From contig JAWQFM010000001.1 of NCBI GenBank assembly GCA_033442325.1, forward strand, positions 1,548,138-1,612,137: a stretch of DNA of 64,000 nucleotides. The letters are read 5' to 3'. Positions within the stretch are counted from its first letter, which is position 1. Every line of letters starts with the position of its first letter. Made by a program: the position numbers and the translations under genes. Under the pieces are notes generated by a model. That model worked only from the letters and a program-made list of their open reading frames with translations. It had not been told where the DNA came from and ran no database searches. Below, in pieces: positions 3,090 to 18,629 of the stretch. Source of the DNA: Salpingoeca rosetta (lineage: Eukaryota; Protista; Choanoflagellata).

Positions 3090-6000
3090 ATGTCGCGCCA
3101 CAACAAGTCCCAGTACCCACCAGGGTACTCCCACTACAGTCAGTCGCCGTACTCCAACCTTCCCCCTTCTGCCCCTCAGCACCCCGGTGTGCCGTTTCCG
3201 CAGCCGAGCATGTCCGTGCCGTACTTTACGCCCAACGCCTATGGGGCTCGCGGCGCCCCGCCCATGCACGCCCAAATGCAGGCCGGCACGACGCCCATGG
3301 GCGTGCCCAGCTCCTACGCCAGCCCGTATGGCTCGCACATGATTGCCCAGCAGCACCAGCAGCAGCAGCTGCAGCCACACACCATGCCTGGCCAGCCTCC
3401 TCACCAGCACGGCCAGCGCCAGCCCATGCCCTTGCGCACGGGTCCCACCATGCCAGCTTCCACCACCGCCGCAACCAACCCCACCACCACGACGCCATCT
3501 GCTCCGCCGAGCAGCAAGCCGGCCGGAAGCACGCTGCTCTTCAAGCTCGGAGATAAGCCGTCCACCCCGACCACCCCTGAGGTGCAAGGCGACGCCACAA
3601 AGCCAGTCCAGCAGCCGCAGAAGGAACTGGAGGAGGCAGCCACGCCCCCGGCCGCCACCATTACCAAGCCCACAGGACCCAAGCGCCTCTTCGAGGTTAC
3701 CAAGCCCAAGGAAGAGGAGGCGGACAAGAACGCAAAGCCCGCCCAGGAGCACGCCAAGGCACCCGAGCCGCAAGCCCCGGCACCGGCTGCCGTCGCCACC
3801 ACCTCCGCCGCTGCTGCCGAGCAGCCCAGCAAGAAGGAAGAGGAGCAAGCCCCAGCACCAAAGGCAGAGGCACCAGCCAGCAGCGCTGCGCCCCAGGCTG
3901 CCGAGGCCACGCAAGCACAACAGCCCGTTAGCGAGCAAGCGCATCCCGCTGACCAGGAACAGCAGGAGCAACAACAAGAGGAAGCAGAGGAGGAAGAGGA
4001 GGAAGAGGAAGAGGAAGAAGACCAAACCCCACCATCTCCCTTGCCCTTTGAGGGCCCCTACACCATGGCTTTTATGATGAGCCTGCGCGAGAAGCCCCAG
4101 TGCCGGGAGTCGCCAACCAACCCCAACAAGTCGCTCAGTGGTCTTCTTCAAGGCACTAAGAACCCGCTCAACCAGTTCGGCCGCGCCCGCACAGATGATC
4201 GCCCGAGCCGCCGCCAGCCTCGCCCAGGCCCCAATAACCAATCCTCCTCGCTGCTTGTTGGTGGCACCCGCCGTCGCGGCGGTGGTCGCCGGCCCATGCC
4301 GCCACCCCAGGCCCGCGGCCCACACCTCATCTCCGTCCACATCCCCGACACGGATGTCACACTCAAGCGCTCCGAGAACGCATTCAAGCGAGGCGAGCAG
4401 AGCATCATTGGCAACCTTCGTGGGCACCTGGGCAAGATCACCCTGGACAACTTTGACGATATTGTCCTTGACATTATCCAGGAGGCAGAGCAGCTCCCTC
4501 CTGACAGCGAGGAGTTTGACAAGTTCATCGAGCTCATCCAGGACACGGTACGACCCCAAATCCTTGCCGTGTGATGGTTGTGTTTGAACGGAACCGCGCG
4601 TGCATGTGTGCGAATCGAGATGTGTCGGTCTTGTCTTGGCGCTATGCGTCGCTCTTGTTCCAAGTGTGACGCTCTGTTCTTGACGCAAAAGAGCAAAGTG
4701 GTGATCCTGTATCTCGCTTAATTGCATGTCCCTATGTTGTCCTCACCTGAACGTACGTGCATGCGGTTTGTTGCCCATCACAGGCCAAGGATAGCGAGTT
4801 CTTCTCCATGATCTACGCAAAGCTGTGCAAGTCCCTGAGCAGAGCGCGAACGGAGAGTATGGGGGCCAAGTTCCCCACCTTCCAGAACAAGCTCCTGGCC
4901 ATTTGCAAGAAGGATGTGCAGGAAGACTTCAAGACGCTTGACACGGAGATCAAGAAGCTCGAGAAGATTGTCAAGGAGCTGCAGCAAGGTCGGTTGTTCT
5001 GTGTGCGTGTTTGCGTGCGTATGTTTGTACGTGCATGTTTGTTTGCGTATGTTTGTACGTGCATGTTGCGTTTGTTTTCTTTGAGTACGCGTGCATTGTT
5101 CCGCTTTGGTGCTTGTGTCTCGTTGCAAGTGAAGTGGTCTCACATCACTCTGCTCCTACTTCTCCTCGCTGTCCTTCCCCCTTTGTTTGTTACAACTTTG
5201 TCTGCGTAGGCAACCCCAACGATCCCGAGCTTCAGAAGCAGGGCGACGAGCTGTACACGCTCAACCGCAAGCGCCAGAAGCTCATTGGCAACGCTGTCTT
5301 TGTCGCTGAGCTCTTCAACGAAACTGTGGTACGTTACAGTGCAGGGTTGAATGCGACTACCCAACAGCAACCAAGCACGACAAACACCAAAACAGCGACA
5401 ACAACATCAACATCACCTCCTCCTCCTCCTCCTCCTCCTTCTTCTTCTTGTTCTTGTTCCCTGTTCTTTCGCCATTCTACGATTTGTGTACGTTCCGTCG
5501 TGGGTTTGTTTCCTTTCGTTCTTTTTTTTTTCGGCCGAAGTGGTATCTGCAGCCTTGAGTTATCCCCATCTCGATGGTTGTTCGAGTCAGGCCAAGACCG
5601 ACACTATATGTTTACAATAGTTGTGCACAAGCTATCGCTCCTTTCGCAAGCATGCGTTATGGTGTCAATACCACTATGCATTGCATGAAAGTGGACGAGT
5701 GCATGCATTCATGCCTTGAGCACACATTCAACCCAATCCGTTTCTTTGTCGTTTCTGTGTTTCCCTTCGTGCTGTTCTTGTGCTTCTTTCTGCGCTCGGC
5801 TTTCAACCGCGTGCTGTGCGCTTTCTTCCTTCATCTCCCTGTACTTTCTTTCGTTCTGATGTTTTGCTTGCCAAGTAACTGTGATGGCGCTGCTCTCACC
5901 GTTTCGATCCGCACCACCCATGCACTGCAGGTAAGCCTTGACCTGCTCAAGCAGGTTGTGGAGACGTACTGGAAGCAGAACGAGGCCGAGGACGCGGTCA

Positions 6001-8738
6001 TGTGCATGTGCAAGATTGTGGAGAAGGCAGGCGCCAAGCTTGAGAAGGAGCAGAAGCCGCTTCTCGAGGAGTACCTCGGCCGACTCTCCGGCTGCAAGCA
6101 CATCCCCAACAAGCTCCAGTTCTTCATCATGGACATCAAGGACCTTCGCAAGAAGGGGTGCGTTGCATGTGTGAGTGTGAGAGAGAGAGGCAGAGAGAGA
6201 GTGTGTGTGTTTGCGTGTGTGAAGGGGGATTGGGCGTGCAATGAAGTCGACGCACTCTTAACAGCCTCACGTTTTTCCATACATTTTCACTCATTCACCA
6301 CTGCTCCGGTCATGATGATGACTGCTTGCATCACACACCCCACAGATGGGTCAAGCCTGAAGATGGTCCGCGCAAGCGCAAGGATGTTATTGCCGAGGCG
6401 CAGGCTGAGATGAAGTCACATGGCCGCCCACTGCAGGGCAGGCGCACCAGCTCCTCCTCACAGGTATGCCACACACAACACACACACACACGCACACACA
6501 CAGAGCACGTCTGTATACAAGATTTTGATGGTGGTGGCATGATGATTGTTACATGATTCTTGAACATCAATAGGAAGTGTCGTCTGATCGGGCGATGAAA
6601 GCCAGCGCTGGAGCCCATGACGATGAATCATGTCTCTGACCACCACCCACCAGTTTCGTCTGTTGCTGTATCTTTACTATTTGTTGCTGTATCGTAACGA
6701 TCGCAGAAGTGCTCCATTGTGCCACCAACAACGTCTTGACTCACCCCTGTTCTCTCTGCTCGTTCTCTCTGCTCGTCTCGTCTCCAATGTTTTTCTCTTC
6801 CTCGTACAGCCGGGTGCAAAGGCAAAGATGACGCAGGAGCGCCGCGACGTGAACAAGATTGGTCTTCAGGGCAAGCTTGCGCCCATGCGCCGCGCCAACC
6901 AGGCGTCCCGCTTCTCCCGCGGTTCCCGCCCGACGCCGCCCGGAAGCCAGTCAGCCACCCCGGCCCCAAGCAAGCCCGCCAACCGCTACAAGCTCCTTGG
7001 CGAGGCTGAGCCCACTCCCGAGCCTGAGACCCCTGCCGCCGAGCCCGCCCAGGACCTCGACAAGCTCAAGCGCTCCTGCAGGAACACCATTGAGGTGCTT
7101 CGCTCTGCGTGCTGTGTCGAGTGTTGTGTTTGTGTACTGGGTTGGTCGTGTTCACATGTCCGTCCACAACCCCATTTCGACCACTGATCATTTCCTCTTG
7201 CTCGCTTGCCCCCACCCAATGATTGACATGAATCATTTCACGTGCGCAGGAGTATGTGCTGAACAAGGACGACAAAGAGCTGTACGCGTGCGTGCGTGAG
7301 CTTGGCGAGGACCAGTACCACGTGTTTGTGTCTGAGCTTGTGGCCGACCTGTTTGGTCTGATCAAGGCCCCGAAGCGCGAGGCCCTCCTCCAGCTGCTGC
7401 AGAAGCTCATGTCCGAGAAGATTCTCACCCACAAGCACGCCCTGCAAGCGTAAGCCGCTGTGTGTGTGTGTGTGTGTGTGATCGATACATGTTGTTGCGC
7501 ATTGCGTTGTGTTCTTGTTTTTGTATTTTTGTGTGTGGCCTTTGTCGAAGCTTCGAGCTTTTTAGCGGCAGTGATTGGCCAGATGTCTATGATGTGAATT
7601 AACCATGCTAATCCTGAATGCCCCTTCATTTACTTGGAGGTGCATACCGTGACGAGCAAATAATCTCGTTAAACTGAGACATCTTGTCGCTGTGCTGTGT
7701 GTTTGTGTGCCATCGATTCTGCTCCTCCTCATTTCCCCACCCGAGTGCTGACCTGCGCGTGATTCTCACACCATGTTTTTGTTTTCGCTGTTTATTTGCT
7801 TGCTTGCCTGCGTCACGCCATCATCTTCGTATCTGTTCGTATCTATCTTTCGTGGTTGGTGTACACAGCACGCACGACCGCCTGGAGACGCTCGATGACG
7901 ACAGCATGGACTCGCCAAAGGCCCCTGCATTCCTGGCGCAGTTTGTTGTCAACGTGAGTTGTTGTTGTGAATGTTGAGCTCCACTGCATTTATCAGTTTT
8001 GTCTGTGCCTCGTCGCTGAGTGTGCTTCTGTTCTAGTTTTACGCTACGTGGCGGATATTGGGCACTCACTCACACTCTTTGCTCCTTGGTCCTGTGGTGG
8101 CATCATTGGAAAGGGTCTTGACGACAACGAGATTGAGACGCTGCTGAAGGATGAGTCCACGCTCAAGCCGCTGATGAACCCCTTCAGCTTTGTTGTTGAG
8201 GTTGTTGCCGCCATGAACGAAGCCAAGGGCGAGGAAGCCGCCAAGAAGCTCACCGCTGCCCTGGGCGGTGACCTGTCCTCCTTCCAGAAGAGGAAGAACG
8301 AGGCGCTGTTTAAGCGCACGCTGGAGCGCAAGGTACGTCTTTCTTTGCACTCCGTTGTTCCTTGTACTGTTGGTTGCTCTTGTGTATGTATGTCGCTGTT
8401 TGACTGTGTCCGGGTGATGAACTCGTGTTTTGAATCAAGATGTATCAGAGTGACCTTTGCGTCACGTGCTGAAGAGAATCACATGCACCACCTTCTGACG
8501 GGCTGTTGTTGTCATTGTGCTGCCGATGTTGTTGTTGTTGTTGTTGTCCATGGTTTTGGCTTGTGACGTCTGTGAGACGTGCGTACGAACGAGCATGTGT
8601 TCTAATCTAACGTTGGCTCTTCCCACTTGTATCTCACGACATGGCTTGTCTTGTTGCACACGTTGCACTGCCTCCTGTTGTCTCCTGTGACTGTTGTGAT
8701 TGCAGGGCTTGTCCTTCCTGCTGCCCACGGAAGCTTAA
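3090..8738 (+). CDS. EIF4G: Translation initiation factor eIF4G (MIF4G + MA3). Exons 3090-4547, 4784-4988, 5210-5328, 5931-6157, 6346-6463, 6810-7094, 7250-7449, 7869-7953, 8114-8332, 8706-8738
   Basis: P/Q-rich N-terminus and YTMAFMM 4E-binding-like motif. MIF4G: LKRSENAF..LRGHLGKITLDNFD..FSMIYAKLC..FQNKLLAIC..GNAVFVAELF..LQFFIMDIKDLRKKGWV. MA3: IEEYVLNKD..ACVREL..MDSPKAPAFLAQF. All junctions are GT-AG and in frame; ends KGLSFLLPTEA*. Confidence 0.9.
5539..5729 (+). ncRNA. Candidate structured intronic RNA (H/ACA-like) in eIF4G intron 3
   Basis: Non-repetitive block with many stems: AGTGGTAT/ATACCACT, GCCT/AGGC, CCATC/GATGG, GACACTA/TGGTGTC, ATAGTT/AGCTAT, GCATGAA/TTCATGC. ANANNA at 5668-73 and ACA+3 nt at 5724-29. 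Confidence 0.4.
6530..6647 (+). ncRNA. Intronic box C/D snoRNA, U49/SNORD49-like (eIF4G intron 5)
   Basis: Perfect 8-bp terminal stem GGTGGTGG/CCACCACC, box C ATGATGA (6539-45), box D CTGA (6636-39), D' CTGA (6584-87). D' is preceded by AATAGGAAGTGTCGT, near-identical to the U49 guide AATAGGAAGTGCCGT (antisense to LSU UCGGCUCUUCCUAU). Internal 9-bp stem ACATGATTC/GAATCATGT. Confidence 0.85.
7581..7684 (+). ncRNA. Intronic box C/D snoRNA with two guides: U6 Am53 (mgU6-53/SNORD8-like) and LSU rRNA (U30-like) (eIF4G intron 7)
   Basis: Terminal stem AGATGTC/GACATCT, box C ATGATGT (7589-95), D' CTGA (7614-17), C' GTGACGA (7649-55), D CTGA (7674-77). D' guide CCATGCTAATC is the reverse complement of U6 GAUUAGCAUGG. 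D guide AATCTCGTTAA is the reverse complement of LSU UUAACGAGAUU. Confidence 0.85.
8408..8503 (+). ncRNA. Intronic box C/D snoRNA, U33/snR55-like (SSU rRNA Um1326 human / Um1269 yeast equivalent) (eIF4G intron 9)
   Basis: Stem GTCCG/CGGGC, box C GTGATGA (8414-20), D' CAGA, hairpin GTGAC/GTCAC, C' TGAAGA, D CTGA (8495-98). Guide CATGCACCACC (8482-92) is antisense to SSU GGUGGUGCAUG with the same D+5 register as U33. Confidence 0.85.
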
Positions 8739-9132
8739 TGCATTTGCAACCTCGTTCCTCTTTGGCTAAGCTAATTCGTCTCTGTTGTGGTGAGTTTGGT
8801 CAACTGCGACATGTGCTCGCCTGGTCTCGTCTTCCTCGTTTGTGTGGCGCTTTGTTTGTCTCTCTCTCTCTCTCTCTTGCTCTCTCTCTTGCTCTCTTGC
8901 TCTTCTTTCTGCTTTTCAACCGCCTTCTCTTGAACGCAGCTGCTAGAGCCTTTCAGCCCTATTTGCGAAGACTTGTGGGCTGTTGAGGTTTGGGAATTTA
9001 CATTTCGCTGCAAGATCACCTTGGGTGCTCTTAGAGTCGACTACGGCTGCTTCCCATCAGCTACTAGTCGCTACCGCACTCGTACACTTGTCTTTTTTGT
9101 TGTTGTTGTATGCAAGTGTGCGTCTCTCTCTC

Positions 9133-10239: not shown

Positions 10240-10313
10240 TGCTCCATACCAGGCTCGAACTGATGACCTTGAGTTTATTAGACTCACGCGCTAACCAACT
10301 GCGCCAATGGAGC
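10240..10313 (-). tRNA. tRNA-Ile (anticodon AAT)
   Basis: Minus strand reads GCTCCATTGGCGCAGTTGGTTAGCGCGTGAGTCTAATAAACTCAAGGTCATCAGTTCGAGCCTGGTATGGAGCA: full cloverleaf, A and B boxes, anticodon loop CT-AAT-AA, and downstream T-runs (Pol III terminator). Confidence 0.95.

Positions 10314-12625: not shown

Positions 12626-18629
<6,004 letters not shown>

Follow-up and report, generated by a model that had tools for sequence, protein, structure and literature searches.

Does a translation-initiation gene of the choanoflagellate Salpingoeca rosetta carry small nucleolar RNAs (snoRNAs) in its introns, and, if so, which RNAs would they modify? The question is raised by PTSG_00456, an eIF4G-like gene located on the forward strand (positions 3090–8738) of the analyzed window, a stretch of 64,000 nt to which all positions refer. 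In the literature that we searched, snoRNAs of S. rosetta or other choanoflagellates are described nowhere.

Structure of the eIF4G-like Gene PTSG_00456

PTSG_00456 comprises 10 exons and 9 introns. Its spliced coding sequence (2949 nt) translates without a stop into a protein identical to P0001 (982 aa). RNA-seq backed all nine introns, six by GT..AG joints and three by loose ends reaching the next exon. Region 4548–8705, which a previous reading of this DNA from its letters alone (the sequence-only reading) had assigned to an eIF4G gene, matches the span of introns 1 through 9 to the base. The assignment holds. Domain analysis revealed the arrangement that defines eIF4G, i.e., a central MIF4G (HEAT-1) domain (residues 443–668, 53.2 bits) followed by an MA3 domain (residues 795–899, 49 bits), both over the Pfam cut-offs, and the nearest solved structures were eIF4GII and eIF4G1. 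Judged by these features, PTSG_00456 is an eIF4G-like gene. Comparison with the eIF4E-binding pattern (N-terminal Y-x4-L-hydrophobic) yielded the candidate motif YTMAFMM (residues 324–330), which resembles YDREFLL with L replaced by M; Y324 and F328 are unchanged across three choanoflagellate sequences. Homologue searches with P0001, P0002, and representatives retrieved only an S. rosetta paralog, the choanoflagellate protein P0002 (a transcriptome-only eIF4G relative placed on no contig), and distant animal eIF4Gs, and a word search with exon 1 gave no match. Microsatellites were found beside non-repetitive blocks in introns 3, 4, 5, 7, and 9, which agrees with the earlier description of these blocks as non-repetitive islands.

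Identification of Three Box C/D Units

Box C/D RNAs were defined by boxes C (RUGAUGA) and D (CUGA), close to the 5′ and 3′ ends, respectively, and by a short terminal stem that flanks them. A box-plus-stem scan of the PTSG_00456 introns returned exactly three matches (C/D boxes at 6539/6636, 7589/7674, and 8414/8495), whereas shuffled introns gave a mean of 0.11 matches and reached three in 0 of 500 shuffles. The three units, hereafter sno1, sno2, and sno3, lie on the forward strand in introns 5 (6464–6809), 7 (7450–7868), and 9 (8333–8705), respectively. All of them follow the rule, with terminal stems of 8, 7, and 5 bp and a single mismatch in one C box (ATGATGT, sno2). Each also has internal D′ and C′ boxes, which read CTGA and TGACGA in sno1 and sno2 and are degenerate in sno3 (CAGA and TGAAGA).

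The sequence-only reading had proposed an Rfam scan of these introns as a check. At gathering thresholds, a tRNA was the sole match in the whole window and sno1–sno3 were unmatched. In an E-value scan, the four best snoRNA matches fell on sno1–sno3, all with sub-threshold scores and with alignments to the family consensus that include the guide segments; snoRNA matches of comparable strength were absent from the remaining 55 kb of the window. Another C/D-like match (12749–12851) with an 11-bp "stem" was rejected as a (GT)n...(CA)n microsatellite artefact, and matches to miRNA families elsewhere in the window were likewise discarded as microsatellites.

Predicted Guides and Target Sites

Guides were defined as antisense elements of at least 10 nt that end beside box D or D′ and whose fifth position faces the modified nucleotide. 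For pairing, we used rDNA units from two environmental metagenome contigs (L040 and L001) and a U6 sequence from another (L046; Rfam U6, 103 bits), so that the duplexes reflect the conserved cores of other eukaryotes and not S. rosetta's own RNAs. A human-gut metagenome contig (L033) was excluded from all comparisons, L122, an animal chromosome retrieved for P0005, was set aside, and an LSU pattern scan of viral contigs gave no match. All three units formed duplexes of 10–12 pairs with SSU, LSU, or U6 that place position 5 at conserved 2′-O-methylation sites listed in PMC3511168 (Table 1). The spacing of the sites agrees as well: the SSU targets in L040 (796 and 1264) are 468 apart and the LSU targets (2302 and 2864) 562 apart, compared to 471 (Am799 to Um1270) and 558 (Am2311 to Cm2869) in Arabidopsis (PMC3511168, Table 1).

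The U49/SNORD49-like sno1 (6530–6647) is formed by boxes C (6539–6545, ATGATGA), D′ (6584–6587, CTGA), C′ (6618–6623, TGACGA), and D (6636–6639, CTGA), an 8-bp terminal stem (6530–6537/6640–6647), and a guide at 6570–6582. Its Rfam match to SNORD49 (26.8 bits, E = 0.003) did not reach the gathering score of 37 bits; the guide is aligned, the guide segment and C′ are kept, and the remainder has diverged. With LSU CGGCTCTTCCTAT, a site unchanged in 75 environmental LSU copies, the guide forms 11 Watson–Crick (WC) pairs, one GU pair, and one U·U mismatch, with the target C at position 5. sno1 would methylate the LSU cytidine of the U49 site, the C in UCGGC*UCUUCC of 28S (asterisks follow the target nucleotide), which corresponds to human 28S Cm4426 and Arabidopsis Cm2869 (PMC3511168, Table 1). 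For the second, D-side guide of sno1, no rRNA target above chance was found.

The second unit, sno2 (7581–7684), is a candidate double-guide RNA with boxes C (7589–7595, ATGATGT), D′ (7614–7617, CTGA), C′ (7649–7655, GTGACGA), and D (7674–7677), a 7-bp terminal stem (7581–7587/7678–7684), and a fold z-score of −4.25. Its D′ guide (7603–7613) is snR53/snoR53Y/U6-53-like, and its D guide (7662–7672) is U30-like. Three Rfam families matched below gathering: snoR53Y (RF01279; 28.8 bits vs. 43), with 15 consecutive guide-region letters equal to the consensus; snoU6-53 (RF00377; 19.8 bits vs. 36), with an alignment spanning the whole unit; and snoU30 (RF01283; 23.4 bits vs. 45), which covers the 3′ half alone and matches the guide. 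The D′ guide forms 10 WC pairs with SSU ATTAGCATGG, where its position 5 faces the target, and 11 contiguous WC pairs with U6 GATTAGCATGG, including guide position 1. It would methylate the A in AUUAGCAUGG (AUUA*GCAUGG), a decamer found in both 18S (yeast Am796, Arabidopsis Am799) and U6 (human A53). The D guide forms 10 WC pairs plus one GU pair with LSU, and 11 WC pairs with TTAACGAGATT, the commonest environmental LSU form. It would methylate the LSU adenosine of the U30 site, the second A in UUAA*CGAGAUU of 28S, known as human Am3804 and Arabidopsis Am2311 (PMC3511168).

The U33/SNORD33-like sno3 (8408–8503) contains boxes C (8414–8420, GTGATGA), C′ (8470–8475, TGAAGA), and D (8495–8498), a tentative D′ box (8446–8449, CAGA), a 5-bp terminal stem (8408–8412/8499–8503), and a D guide at 8482–8492. 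The guide is aligned in the Rfam match to SNORD33 (RF00133; 22 bits vs. a gathering score of 44) and forms 11 WC pairs with SSU GGTGGTGCATG, placing the target U opposite position 5. sno3 would methylate the 18S uridine of the U33/snR55 site, the U in GGU*GGUGCAUG, i.e., human Um1326 and Arabidopsis Um1270 (PMC3511168). On the D′ side of sno3, no significant rRNA target was found. The claim that three introns each hold a complete box C/D RNA with stem and guide is thus borne out by a scan with 3 matches against 0.11 expected and by guides that match curated families and real rRNA.

Comparison with the Paralog PTSG_05316

PTSG_05316 is a 95%-identical paralog of PTSG_00456, and sno1–sno3 are 100% identical in both genes. 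The paralog alignment contains 0 differences in 324 snoRNA nt, compared to 91 mismatches and 89 gap columns across the remaining 2425 intron columns; elsewhere, the introns thus differ by ~4% plus indels. The three longest identical intron runs coincide with the snoRNA islands (167 nt for sno1, 245 nt for sno2, and 169 nt for sno3), and identical runs in the other introns of the pair reach 87 nt at most. As evidence, the paralog comparison is strong for sno1 alone. Overall, the paralogs resemble each other more closely in the 3′ half of the duplicated block, possibly through gene conversion, and a placement test conditioned on the observed paralog differences gave a P of only about 0.04 for sno1–sno3 jointly.

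We rejected the idea that polymorphisms in the reads represent alleles, as 25 of 25 variant letters equal the letter of the paralog. The expression balance between PTSG_00456 and PTSG_05316 varies by sample.

H/ACA Candidates in Introns 1 and 3

The sequence-only reading had also proposed two H/ACA-like folds. H/ACA RNAs were defined by the order hairpin-H(ANANNA)-hairpin-ACA, in which the ACA precedes the 3′ end by 3 nt and a bipartite pocket, complementary to rRNA or snRNA around a U, lies 14–16 nt upstream of the box. A strict scan of the PTSG_00456 introns for this order found nothing, Rfam gave no H/ACA match even at E ≤ 10, and seven candidate pockets all scored within the range of shuffled pockets against rRNA. 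A relaxed scan of the introns gave one arrangement, compared to 0.01 expected, which is located in intron 1 (4632–4783, forward strand; H box AAAAGA at 4687, ACA at 4780). This sole hairpin-H-hairpin-ACA geometry and an unusually stable fold (z-scores of −3.5 to −3.9) speak for a structured RNA in intron 1. Against it, the minimum free energy (MFE) structure differs from an H/ACA fold: it forms a four-way junction, in which the H box lies buried within a helix and loop. The ACA coincides with the splice acceptor (ACAG|), which leaves a 1-nt tail. Furthermore, the paralog carries uncompensated substitutions in the lower stem and the 3′ hairpin; it changes 4634–4635, has eight substitutions in 4711–4758, and diverges by ~9% across 4698–4783. 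The pockets are at chance. We rejected this region as a snoRNA.

Intron 3 holds a non-repetitive block (5530–5730, forward strand) with hairpins (e.g., 5650–5683). In the paralog, TAT>GGC together with A>G either preserves one helix by compensation or lengthens it, and 5644–5876 is covered by a small excess of reads and, in run X9, by a contig at depth 169. However, such a clustered change could come from quasi-palindrome template switching without selection, and the block diverges from the paralog at a rate near the intron average (6 substitutions and a 5-nt indel). Fold z-scores are only −1.1 to −1.8, an H/ACA double unit is lacking, and pockets are at chance; by every test applied, the block is neither an H/ACA nor a C/D RNA. 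It is improbable that, besides the three C/D RNAs, intron 1, intron 3, or both yield genuine H/ACA snoRNAs or some other stable, structured RNA. The two proposed H/ACA RNAs are most likely plain intron sequence.

Proposed Function of the C/D Units and Alternative Explanations

The C/D-like blocks could also be chance combinations of motifs, or relics in decay, from which no stable and functional snoRNAs are made. Several observations point in this direction: every Rfam score is below gathering, and the guide duplex scores by themselves exceed those of shuffled guides by just 1–3 sd. The units are located 162–202 nt upstream of the 3′ splice sites, farther than the mammalian C/D optimum, which Hirose and Steitz reportedly placed in 2001 at roughly 70–80 nt. 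RNA-seq (three stranded runs, 101-nt paired libraries of the mRNA type) covered the snoRNA-intron bins at 0–10x, compared to 200–600x for exons, with no start or end pile-ups at sno1–sno3. The low intron depth is, however, uninformative rather than negative, because mRNA-type libraries would lose non-polyadenylated RNAs of ~100 nt. Chance or decay is also hard to reconcile with three complete units where 0.11 are expected, each of which coincides with an independent Rfam match whose family fits its guide segment, with targets that are ancient conserved methylation sites (PMC3511168, Table 1), and with the lack of any substitution across 324 nt in two paralogs that elsewhere diverge in their introns by ~4% plus indels. 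We consider this explanation very unlikely and conclude that PTSG_00456 is very probably a host gene whose introns 5, 7, and 9 each encode a box C/D snoRNA. The three RNAs would be freed from the excised introns by debranching and exonucleolytic trimming. The C/D kink-turn and the terminal stem, with Snu13, Nop56, Nop58, and fibrillarin attached, would shield them from this trimming. Each would then guide 2′-O-methylation of the nucleotide that pairs with the fifth guide position, counted upstream from box D or D′. Accumulation of the three RNAs and methylation at their target sites are predicted on these grounds, and eIF4G expression may be coupled to rRNA/U6 modification in a regulatory manner.

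A further question concerns the target of the sno2 D′ guide; the sequence-only reading had named U6 modification beside that of rRNA. As a dedicated U6 guide of the mgU6-53 type, it would not act on rRNA, and sno2 would couple spliceosomal with ribosomal modification. This is consistent with the 11 contiguous WC pairs with U6, position 1 included, compared to 10 with 18S, and with the snoU6-53 alignment (19.8 bits) over the full unit. In addition, mgU6-53 is present in animals, the sister group of choanoflagellates, and a human 18S site at this position is absent from Table 1 of PMC3511168. However, the stronger Rfam match is the 18S guide snoR53Y (28.8 bits, 15 identical guide-region letters), and the same decamer occurs in 18S at a position methylated in yeast and plants (PMC3511168). 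The U6 pairing stands, 18S fits equally well (10 bp), and a U6-only role is rather doubtful. The choice need not be exclusive, because for Neurospora crassa CD11, an intronic snR53 homologue, both 18S and U6 are reported as targets of one D′ guide (PMC2780460). It is conceivable, though less likely than not, that the sno2 D′ guide methylates both 18S (the fungal/plant snR53 site) and U6 (the vertebrate mgU6-53 site) via the shared decamer AUUAGCAUGG. With its additional U30-type guide for LSU, sno2 would then be a single intronic RNA, within a translation-initiation gene, that reaches SSU, LSU, and the spliceosome. If this is true, sno2 would represent a dual-target intermediate, in the closest unicellular relatives of animals, ancestral to animal mgU6-53, and the dedicated animal U6 guide would have arisen on loss of the 18S mark. 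The three RNAs offer a handle on the timing at which an snR53-type guide turned into a U6 guide.

Comparison with Known snoRNAs and Hosts

The three so far unannotated RNAs extend the snoRNA catalogue of choanoflagellates, the animals' sister group, by guides of the U49, U33, U30, and snR53/U6-53 types, and leave the view of how snoRNAs work unchanged. With U49/SNORD49 (RF00277, clan CL00062; plant AtU49, RF00337), sno1 shares a D′ guide near-identical to the consensus AAUAGGAAGUG.CGUC, the same internal U·U mismatch against LSU, the same predicted LSU cytidine, and the C′ box TGACGA. In contrast to that family, it is 118 nt long (compared to ~71), has 38 nt separating C from D′ and a hairpin in the D′–C′ interval, and is hosted by an eIF4G-like gene; human SNORD49 copies reside in a non-coding host gene. 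sno3 resembles U33/SNORD33/yeast snR55 (RF00133/RF00472, clan CL00054) in its D guide CAUGCACCACC, with 11 WC pairs to 18S GGUGGUGCAUG, and in a target U that is the same as human Um1326 and Arabidopsis Um1270, but lacks a recognisable second guide. The human U33 is encoded in RPL13A.

sno2 combines features of two families. Its D′ guide ACCAUGCUAAU is common to snR53/snoR53Y (RF00338/RF01279, clan CL00080), mgU6-53 (RF00377), and CD11, and its predicted targets correspond to theirs, namely the 18S adenosine (yeast Am796, Arabidopsis Am799), the adenosine of AUUAGC in U6, or both. Its D guide AAUCUCGUUAA matches the U30 consensus of plants and, as in U30/SNORD30 (RF00088; plant snoU30, RF01283; clan CL00052), complements the LSU position known as human Am3804 and Arabidopsis Am2311. 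Unlike in U30, this guide upstream of D is joined with an snR53-type guide. CD11 is also reported to use its D guide for an LSU site (PMC2780460), but at 26S A356, whereas the U30-like guide of sno2 pairs with LSU UUAACGAGAUU.

Regarding the host, the arrangement that the earlier view called animal-style is not special to animals and their relatives. In Neurospora crassa, 45 of 55 C/D snoRNAs are intronic, in what is called a one-per-intron mode (PMC2780460), and according to Hoeppner and Poole, snoRNA host positions drift among broadly expressed genes (PMC3511168). The layout of PTSG_00456, with one snoRNA per intron, is ordinary for eukaryotes and known in fungi, too. The duplicated host with identical snoRNAs and sample-dependent expression provides a small natural case of the "constrained drift" view (PMC3511168). 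One-per-intron hosting in a translation-factor gene exists in the sister group of animals, and one human counterpart is EIF4G2, which hosts SNORD97 (PMC4696412). Both are broadly expressed translation-factor genes with one snoRNA per intron; PTSG_00456, in contrast, holds three snoRNAs, and its whole unit is duplicated. As the snoRNA families differ, hosting by PTSG_00456 and by EIF4G2 is not orthologous.

Host gene

The interval 4548–8705 is bounded by the opening base of intron 1 and the closing base of intron 9 in a single plus-strand gene, PTSG_00456, whose model comprises 10 exons with an ATG at 3090 and a TAA ending at 8738. The spliced coding sequence (2949 nt) encodes 982 residues without an internal stop. 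Splicing was assessed using stranded reads from three RNA-seq runs together with contigs from a fourth run. GT..AG joints were obtained for introns 1 (4548–4783), 2 (4989–5209), 3 (5329–5930), 6 (7095–7249), 8 (7954–8113), and 9 (8333–8705), all on the plus strand, as are introns 4 (6158–6345), 5 (6464–6809), and 7 (7450–7868), where joints were dropped because of microsatellites and loose read ends continue into the neighbouring exon. A search of representative proteins returned a 982-aa protein with 100% identity to exon 4, hypothetical protein PTSG_00456 of Salpingoeca rosetta on GL832955.1, with the same gene span as our model; the sequence-only reading had correctly presumed a unicellular relative of animals. 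PTSG_00456 contains MIF4G (53 bits) and MA3 (49 bits) domains, both above the Pfam cut-offs, among proteins of solved structure it is closest to eIF4GII and eIF4G1 (E ~1e-16), and it carries YTMAFMM at the place of eIF4G's eIF4E-binding YxxxxL-hydrophobic motif. These features justify the label “eIF4G-like”, and the host assignment to eIF4G is upheld in this form.

Probable box C/D snoRNAs in introns 5, 7, and 9

The nine introns were scanned for units with a C box of at most one mismatch, CTGA 45–150 nt downstream, and a flanking stem of at least 4 bp. Exactly three matches were found, all on the plus strand: sno1 in intron 5 (6530–6647; C at 6539, D at 6636, 8-bp stem), sno2 in intron 7 (7581–7684; C at 7589, D at 7674, 7-bp stem), and sno3 in intron 9 (8408–8503; C at 8414, D at 8495, 5-bp stem). 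Shuffled introns yielded a mean of 0.11 matches, and three were reached in none of 500 shuffles. The top snoRNA matches of a permissive Rfam scan of 4400–8900 fell on the same units, namely SNORD49 on sno1 (6535–6641; 26.8 bits, E = 0.003), snoR53Y (7582–7684; 28.8 bits) and snoU6-53 (19.8 bits) on sno2, snoU30 on the 3′ half of sno2 (23.4 bits), and SNORD33 on sno3 (8407–8504; 22 bits). Every one of these matches is below the gathering score, and a default Rfam scan therefore misses them. The conserved portion of each alignment consists of the boxes and the guide adjoining D or D′, which is the pattern that distant homologues would be expected to show, and the minimum free energy (MFE) folds of all three units contain the terminal stem. 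The other 55 kb of the window gave no comparable snoRNA match in the Rfam scan, only microsatellite-driven miRNA look-alikes. Taken together, sno1, sno2, and sno3 are very probably genuine box C/D snoRNAs; of the five intronic RNAs originally proposed, these three were confirmed and the two of H/ACA type were not.

Elsewhere in the window, a C/D-like match at 12749–12851 with an 11-bp “terminal stem” was rejected as artefactual, since a long (GT)n tract lies opposite (CA)n there. Look-alike matches to mir-466, mir-297, and mir-3149 across the window are likewise explained by microsatellites.

Predicted guide targets

Guide pairing was evaluated with complete environmental eukaryote rDNA units (metagenome contigs L040 and L001; SSU, 5.8S, and LSU annotated by Rfam) and with a U6 gene (103 bits) on environmental contig L046. 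With SSU GGTGGTGCATG, the D guide of sno3 forms 11 Watson–Crick pairs that place a U opposite position 5. The D guide of sno2 is complementary to LSU TTAAYGAGATT, whose second A faces position 5, and forms 11 Watson–Crick pairs with the commonest environmental form, TTAACGAGATT; the D′ guide of sno2 forms 10 Watson–Crick pairs with SSU ATTAGCATGG. For the D′ guide of sno1 and LSU CGGCTCTTCCTAT, we found 11 Watson–Crick pairs, one GU pair, and one U.U mismatch that is also implied by the SNORD49 consensus, with a C facing position 5. The corresponding families have listed sites (Hoeppner & Poole, PMC3511168, Table 1): U33/snR55 at human 18S Um1326, Arabidopsis Um1270, and yeast Um1267; snoR53Y/snR53 at Arabidopsis 18S Am799 and yeast Am796 (human none listed); U30 at human 28S Am3804 and Arabidopsis Am2311 (yeast none listed); and U49 at human 28S Cm4426 and Arabidopsis Cm2869 (yeast none listed). 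The predicted sites in L040 are SSU 796 and 1264 and LSU 2302 and 2864, with spacings at most 4 nt off those of Arabidopsis. Each duplex score alone is only 1–3 sd over shuffled guides; the weight of the predicted assignments lies in known conserved sites being hit by family-like guides, not in these scores. Neither the D guide of sno1 nor the D′ side of sno3 had an rRNA target above chance.

The D′ guide of sno2 had been read as a U6 guide. It does form 11 contiguous Watson–Crick pairs with U6 GATTAGCATGG, but 18S pairs as well (11 bp versus 10 bp), and the top family match, snoR53Y, is an 18S guide. The decamer AUUAGCAUGG is common to U6 and 18S and lies at an 18S position that is methylated in yeast and plants. 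In Neurospora crassa, one D′ guide of CD11, an intronic snR53 homologue, is reported for both 18S and U6 methylation, and its D guide for an additional LSU site (PMC2780460). Given the shared decamer, the similar pairing, and this precedent, it is plausible that the D′ guide of sno2 may serve both 18S and U6. As a side observation, a U6 gene lies beside 5S rRNA and downstream of LSU rRNA on L046 (606–924, minus strand) and on a further environmental contig, L002, which links U6 to the rDNA unit in these organisms.

Comparison with the paralog

S. rosetta has a second gene copy, PTSG_05316 (988 aa), on another scaffold (GL832966.1). The duplication covers ~5.9 kb (3251–9096 versus 3195–9063 of contig L121, 95.2% identity), and upstream of 3251, a stretch comprising the promoter plus ~54 initial codons, the two copies are unrelated. 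Of 2425 intron columns outside the snoRNAs, 91 are mismatched and 89 are gapped, and of the 324 snoRNA positions none differs. The longest difference-free intron runs (6493–6659, 7547–7791, and 8354–8522) each enclose one snoRNA; such runs reach at most 87 nt in every other intron. At each intron's own substitution rate, the probability of zero changes is estimated at ~7e-5 for sno1, 0.08 for sno2, and 0.12 for sno3, and a stricter test of placement, which takes the pattern of differences as fixed, yields ~0.04 for all three jointly. Toward its 3′ end the duplication shows greater similarity overall, with 100% identity in exons 7–10, possibly through gene conversion. On this comparison, paralog identity clearly supports constraint on sno1 and does so suggestively for sno2 and sno3. 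The paralog preserves both the boxes and the guides, whose lack of conservation had been named as grounds for refutation, and counterparts of the guides occur in plant, fungal, and animal families.

At 10240–10313 (minus strand), ~1.5 kb downstream of PTSG_00456, Rfam identifies a tRNA gene with 63.5 bits. Since a stretch with 92% identity to this region occurs at the corresponding spot downstream of PTSG_05316 (L121 9683–9782), the duplication may reach the tRNA, with indels in between.

H/ACA candidates in introns 1 and 3

A strict hairpin-ANANNA-hairpin-ACA scan of the introns returned nothing, no H/ACA match at E ≤ 10 was obtained by the Rfam scan, and none of the candidate pockets pairs with rRNA above chance. 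A relaxed geometric scan identified seven single hairpin-box units versus 4.6 expected, and one double unit, at 4632–4783 in intron 1, versus 0.01 expected. The 3′ part of intron 1 also folds unusually stably (z ~−3.5 to −3.9). As an H/ACA RNA, however, this double unit was rejected: its ACA (4780–4782) belongs to the splice acceptor ACAG, which leaves a 1-nt tail at most, the paralog breaks the 4-bp lower stem (4634–4635) and has eight uncompensated substitutions within 4711–4758 in the 3′ hairpin, and the MFE fold is a different, four-way structure. In intron 3, the non-repetitive block 5530–5730 shows ordinary fold stability (z ~−1 to −1.8) and diverges from the paralog at about the intron average. 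The stem of its hairpin at 5650–5683 is kept and lengthened by the paralog's TAT>GGC (5658–5660) plus A>G (5673), changing T-A to C-G and A/C to G-C, which could reflect either selection on structure or quasi-palindrome template switching. The two additional H/ACA-like RNAs are thus unsupported by scans, paralog, folds, pockets, and Rfam, and we consider some structured RNA in intron 1 or 3 improbable.

The ends of intron 1 pair in the MFE fold (4570–4578, GTGTGATGG, with 4773–4780, CCATCACA), and neither arm differs in the paralog; this could be a putative intron-bridging helix.

Expression

Reads from the host mRNA show good expression and come from the sense strand. All variant letters in RNA-seq reads across 4857–8742 (25/25) are the paralog's letter; hence, both host genes are transcribed. 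The paralog's read share amounts to about two thirds in run X23, ~5% in X22, and 20–35% in X21, which suggests that the two eIF4G genes are used differently depending on condition or cell type. Bins of the snoRNA-bearing introns have 0–10x depth without read-end pile-ups, in 101-nt paired mRNA-type libraries that are uninformative on ~100-nt RNAs. A back-joint from 8311 to 7068 (1244 nt, within the gene) was seen in four reads with two start positions in X21 and was absent from the other runs; either a circular RNA or an artefact of the library may account for it.

Comparison with known systems

In vertebrates, intronic C/D snoRNAs, one per intron, in broadly expressed and often translation-related genes are standard. 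The arrangement, described as animal-style by the sequence-only reading, is not confined to animals, as the intronic mode also accounts for the majority in Neurospora (45 of 55 C/D snoRNAs; PMC2780460). Like PTSG_00456, human EIF4G2 is an eIF4G-type host, carrying SNORD97 (PMC4696412); as SNORD97 belongs to a different family, hosting in the two genes is analogous, not orthologous, in line with the proposal that snoRNAs move by drift from one broadly expressed host to another (PMC3511168). In the literature searched, we found no paper on choanoflagellate snoRNAs.

Accordingly, sno1, sno2, and sno3 are most suitably classified as previously unannotated additions to known guide families, probably U49, a chimera of snR53/U6-53 and U30, and U33, respectively, and are predicted to function like these families, though below Rfam thresholds. 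They sit 162–202 nt from the 3′ splice site, are longer than the SNORD49, snoR53Y, snoU30, and SNORD33 models (96–118 versus 71–86 nt), and carry hairpins between D′ and C′. Further differences are the joining of two guide types in sno2 and the duplication of the entire host and snoRNA unit in S. rosetta. Compared with the known systems, this is a solid finding at the level of annotation, made in an organism of evolutionary interest, rather than a new kind of system.
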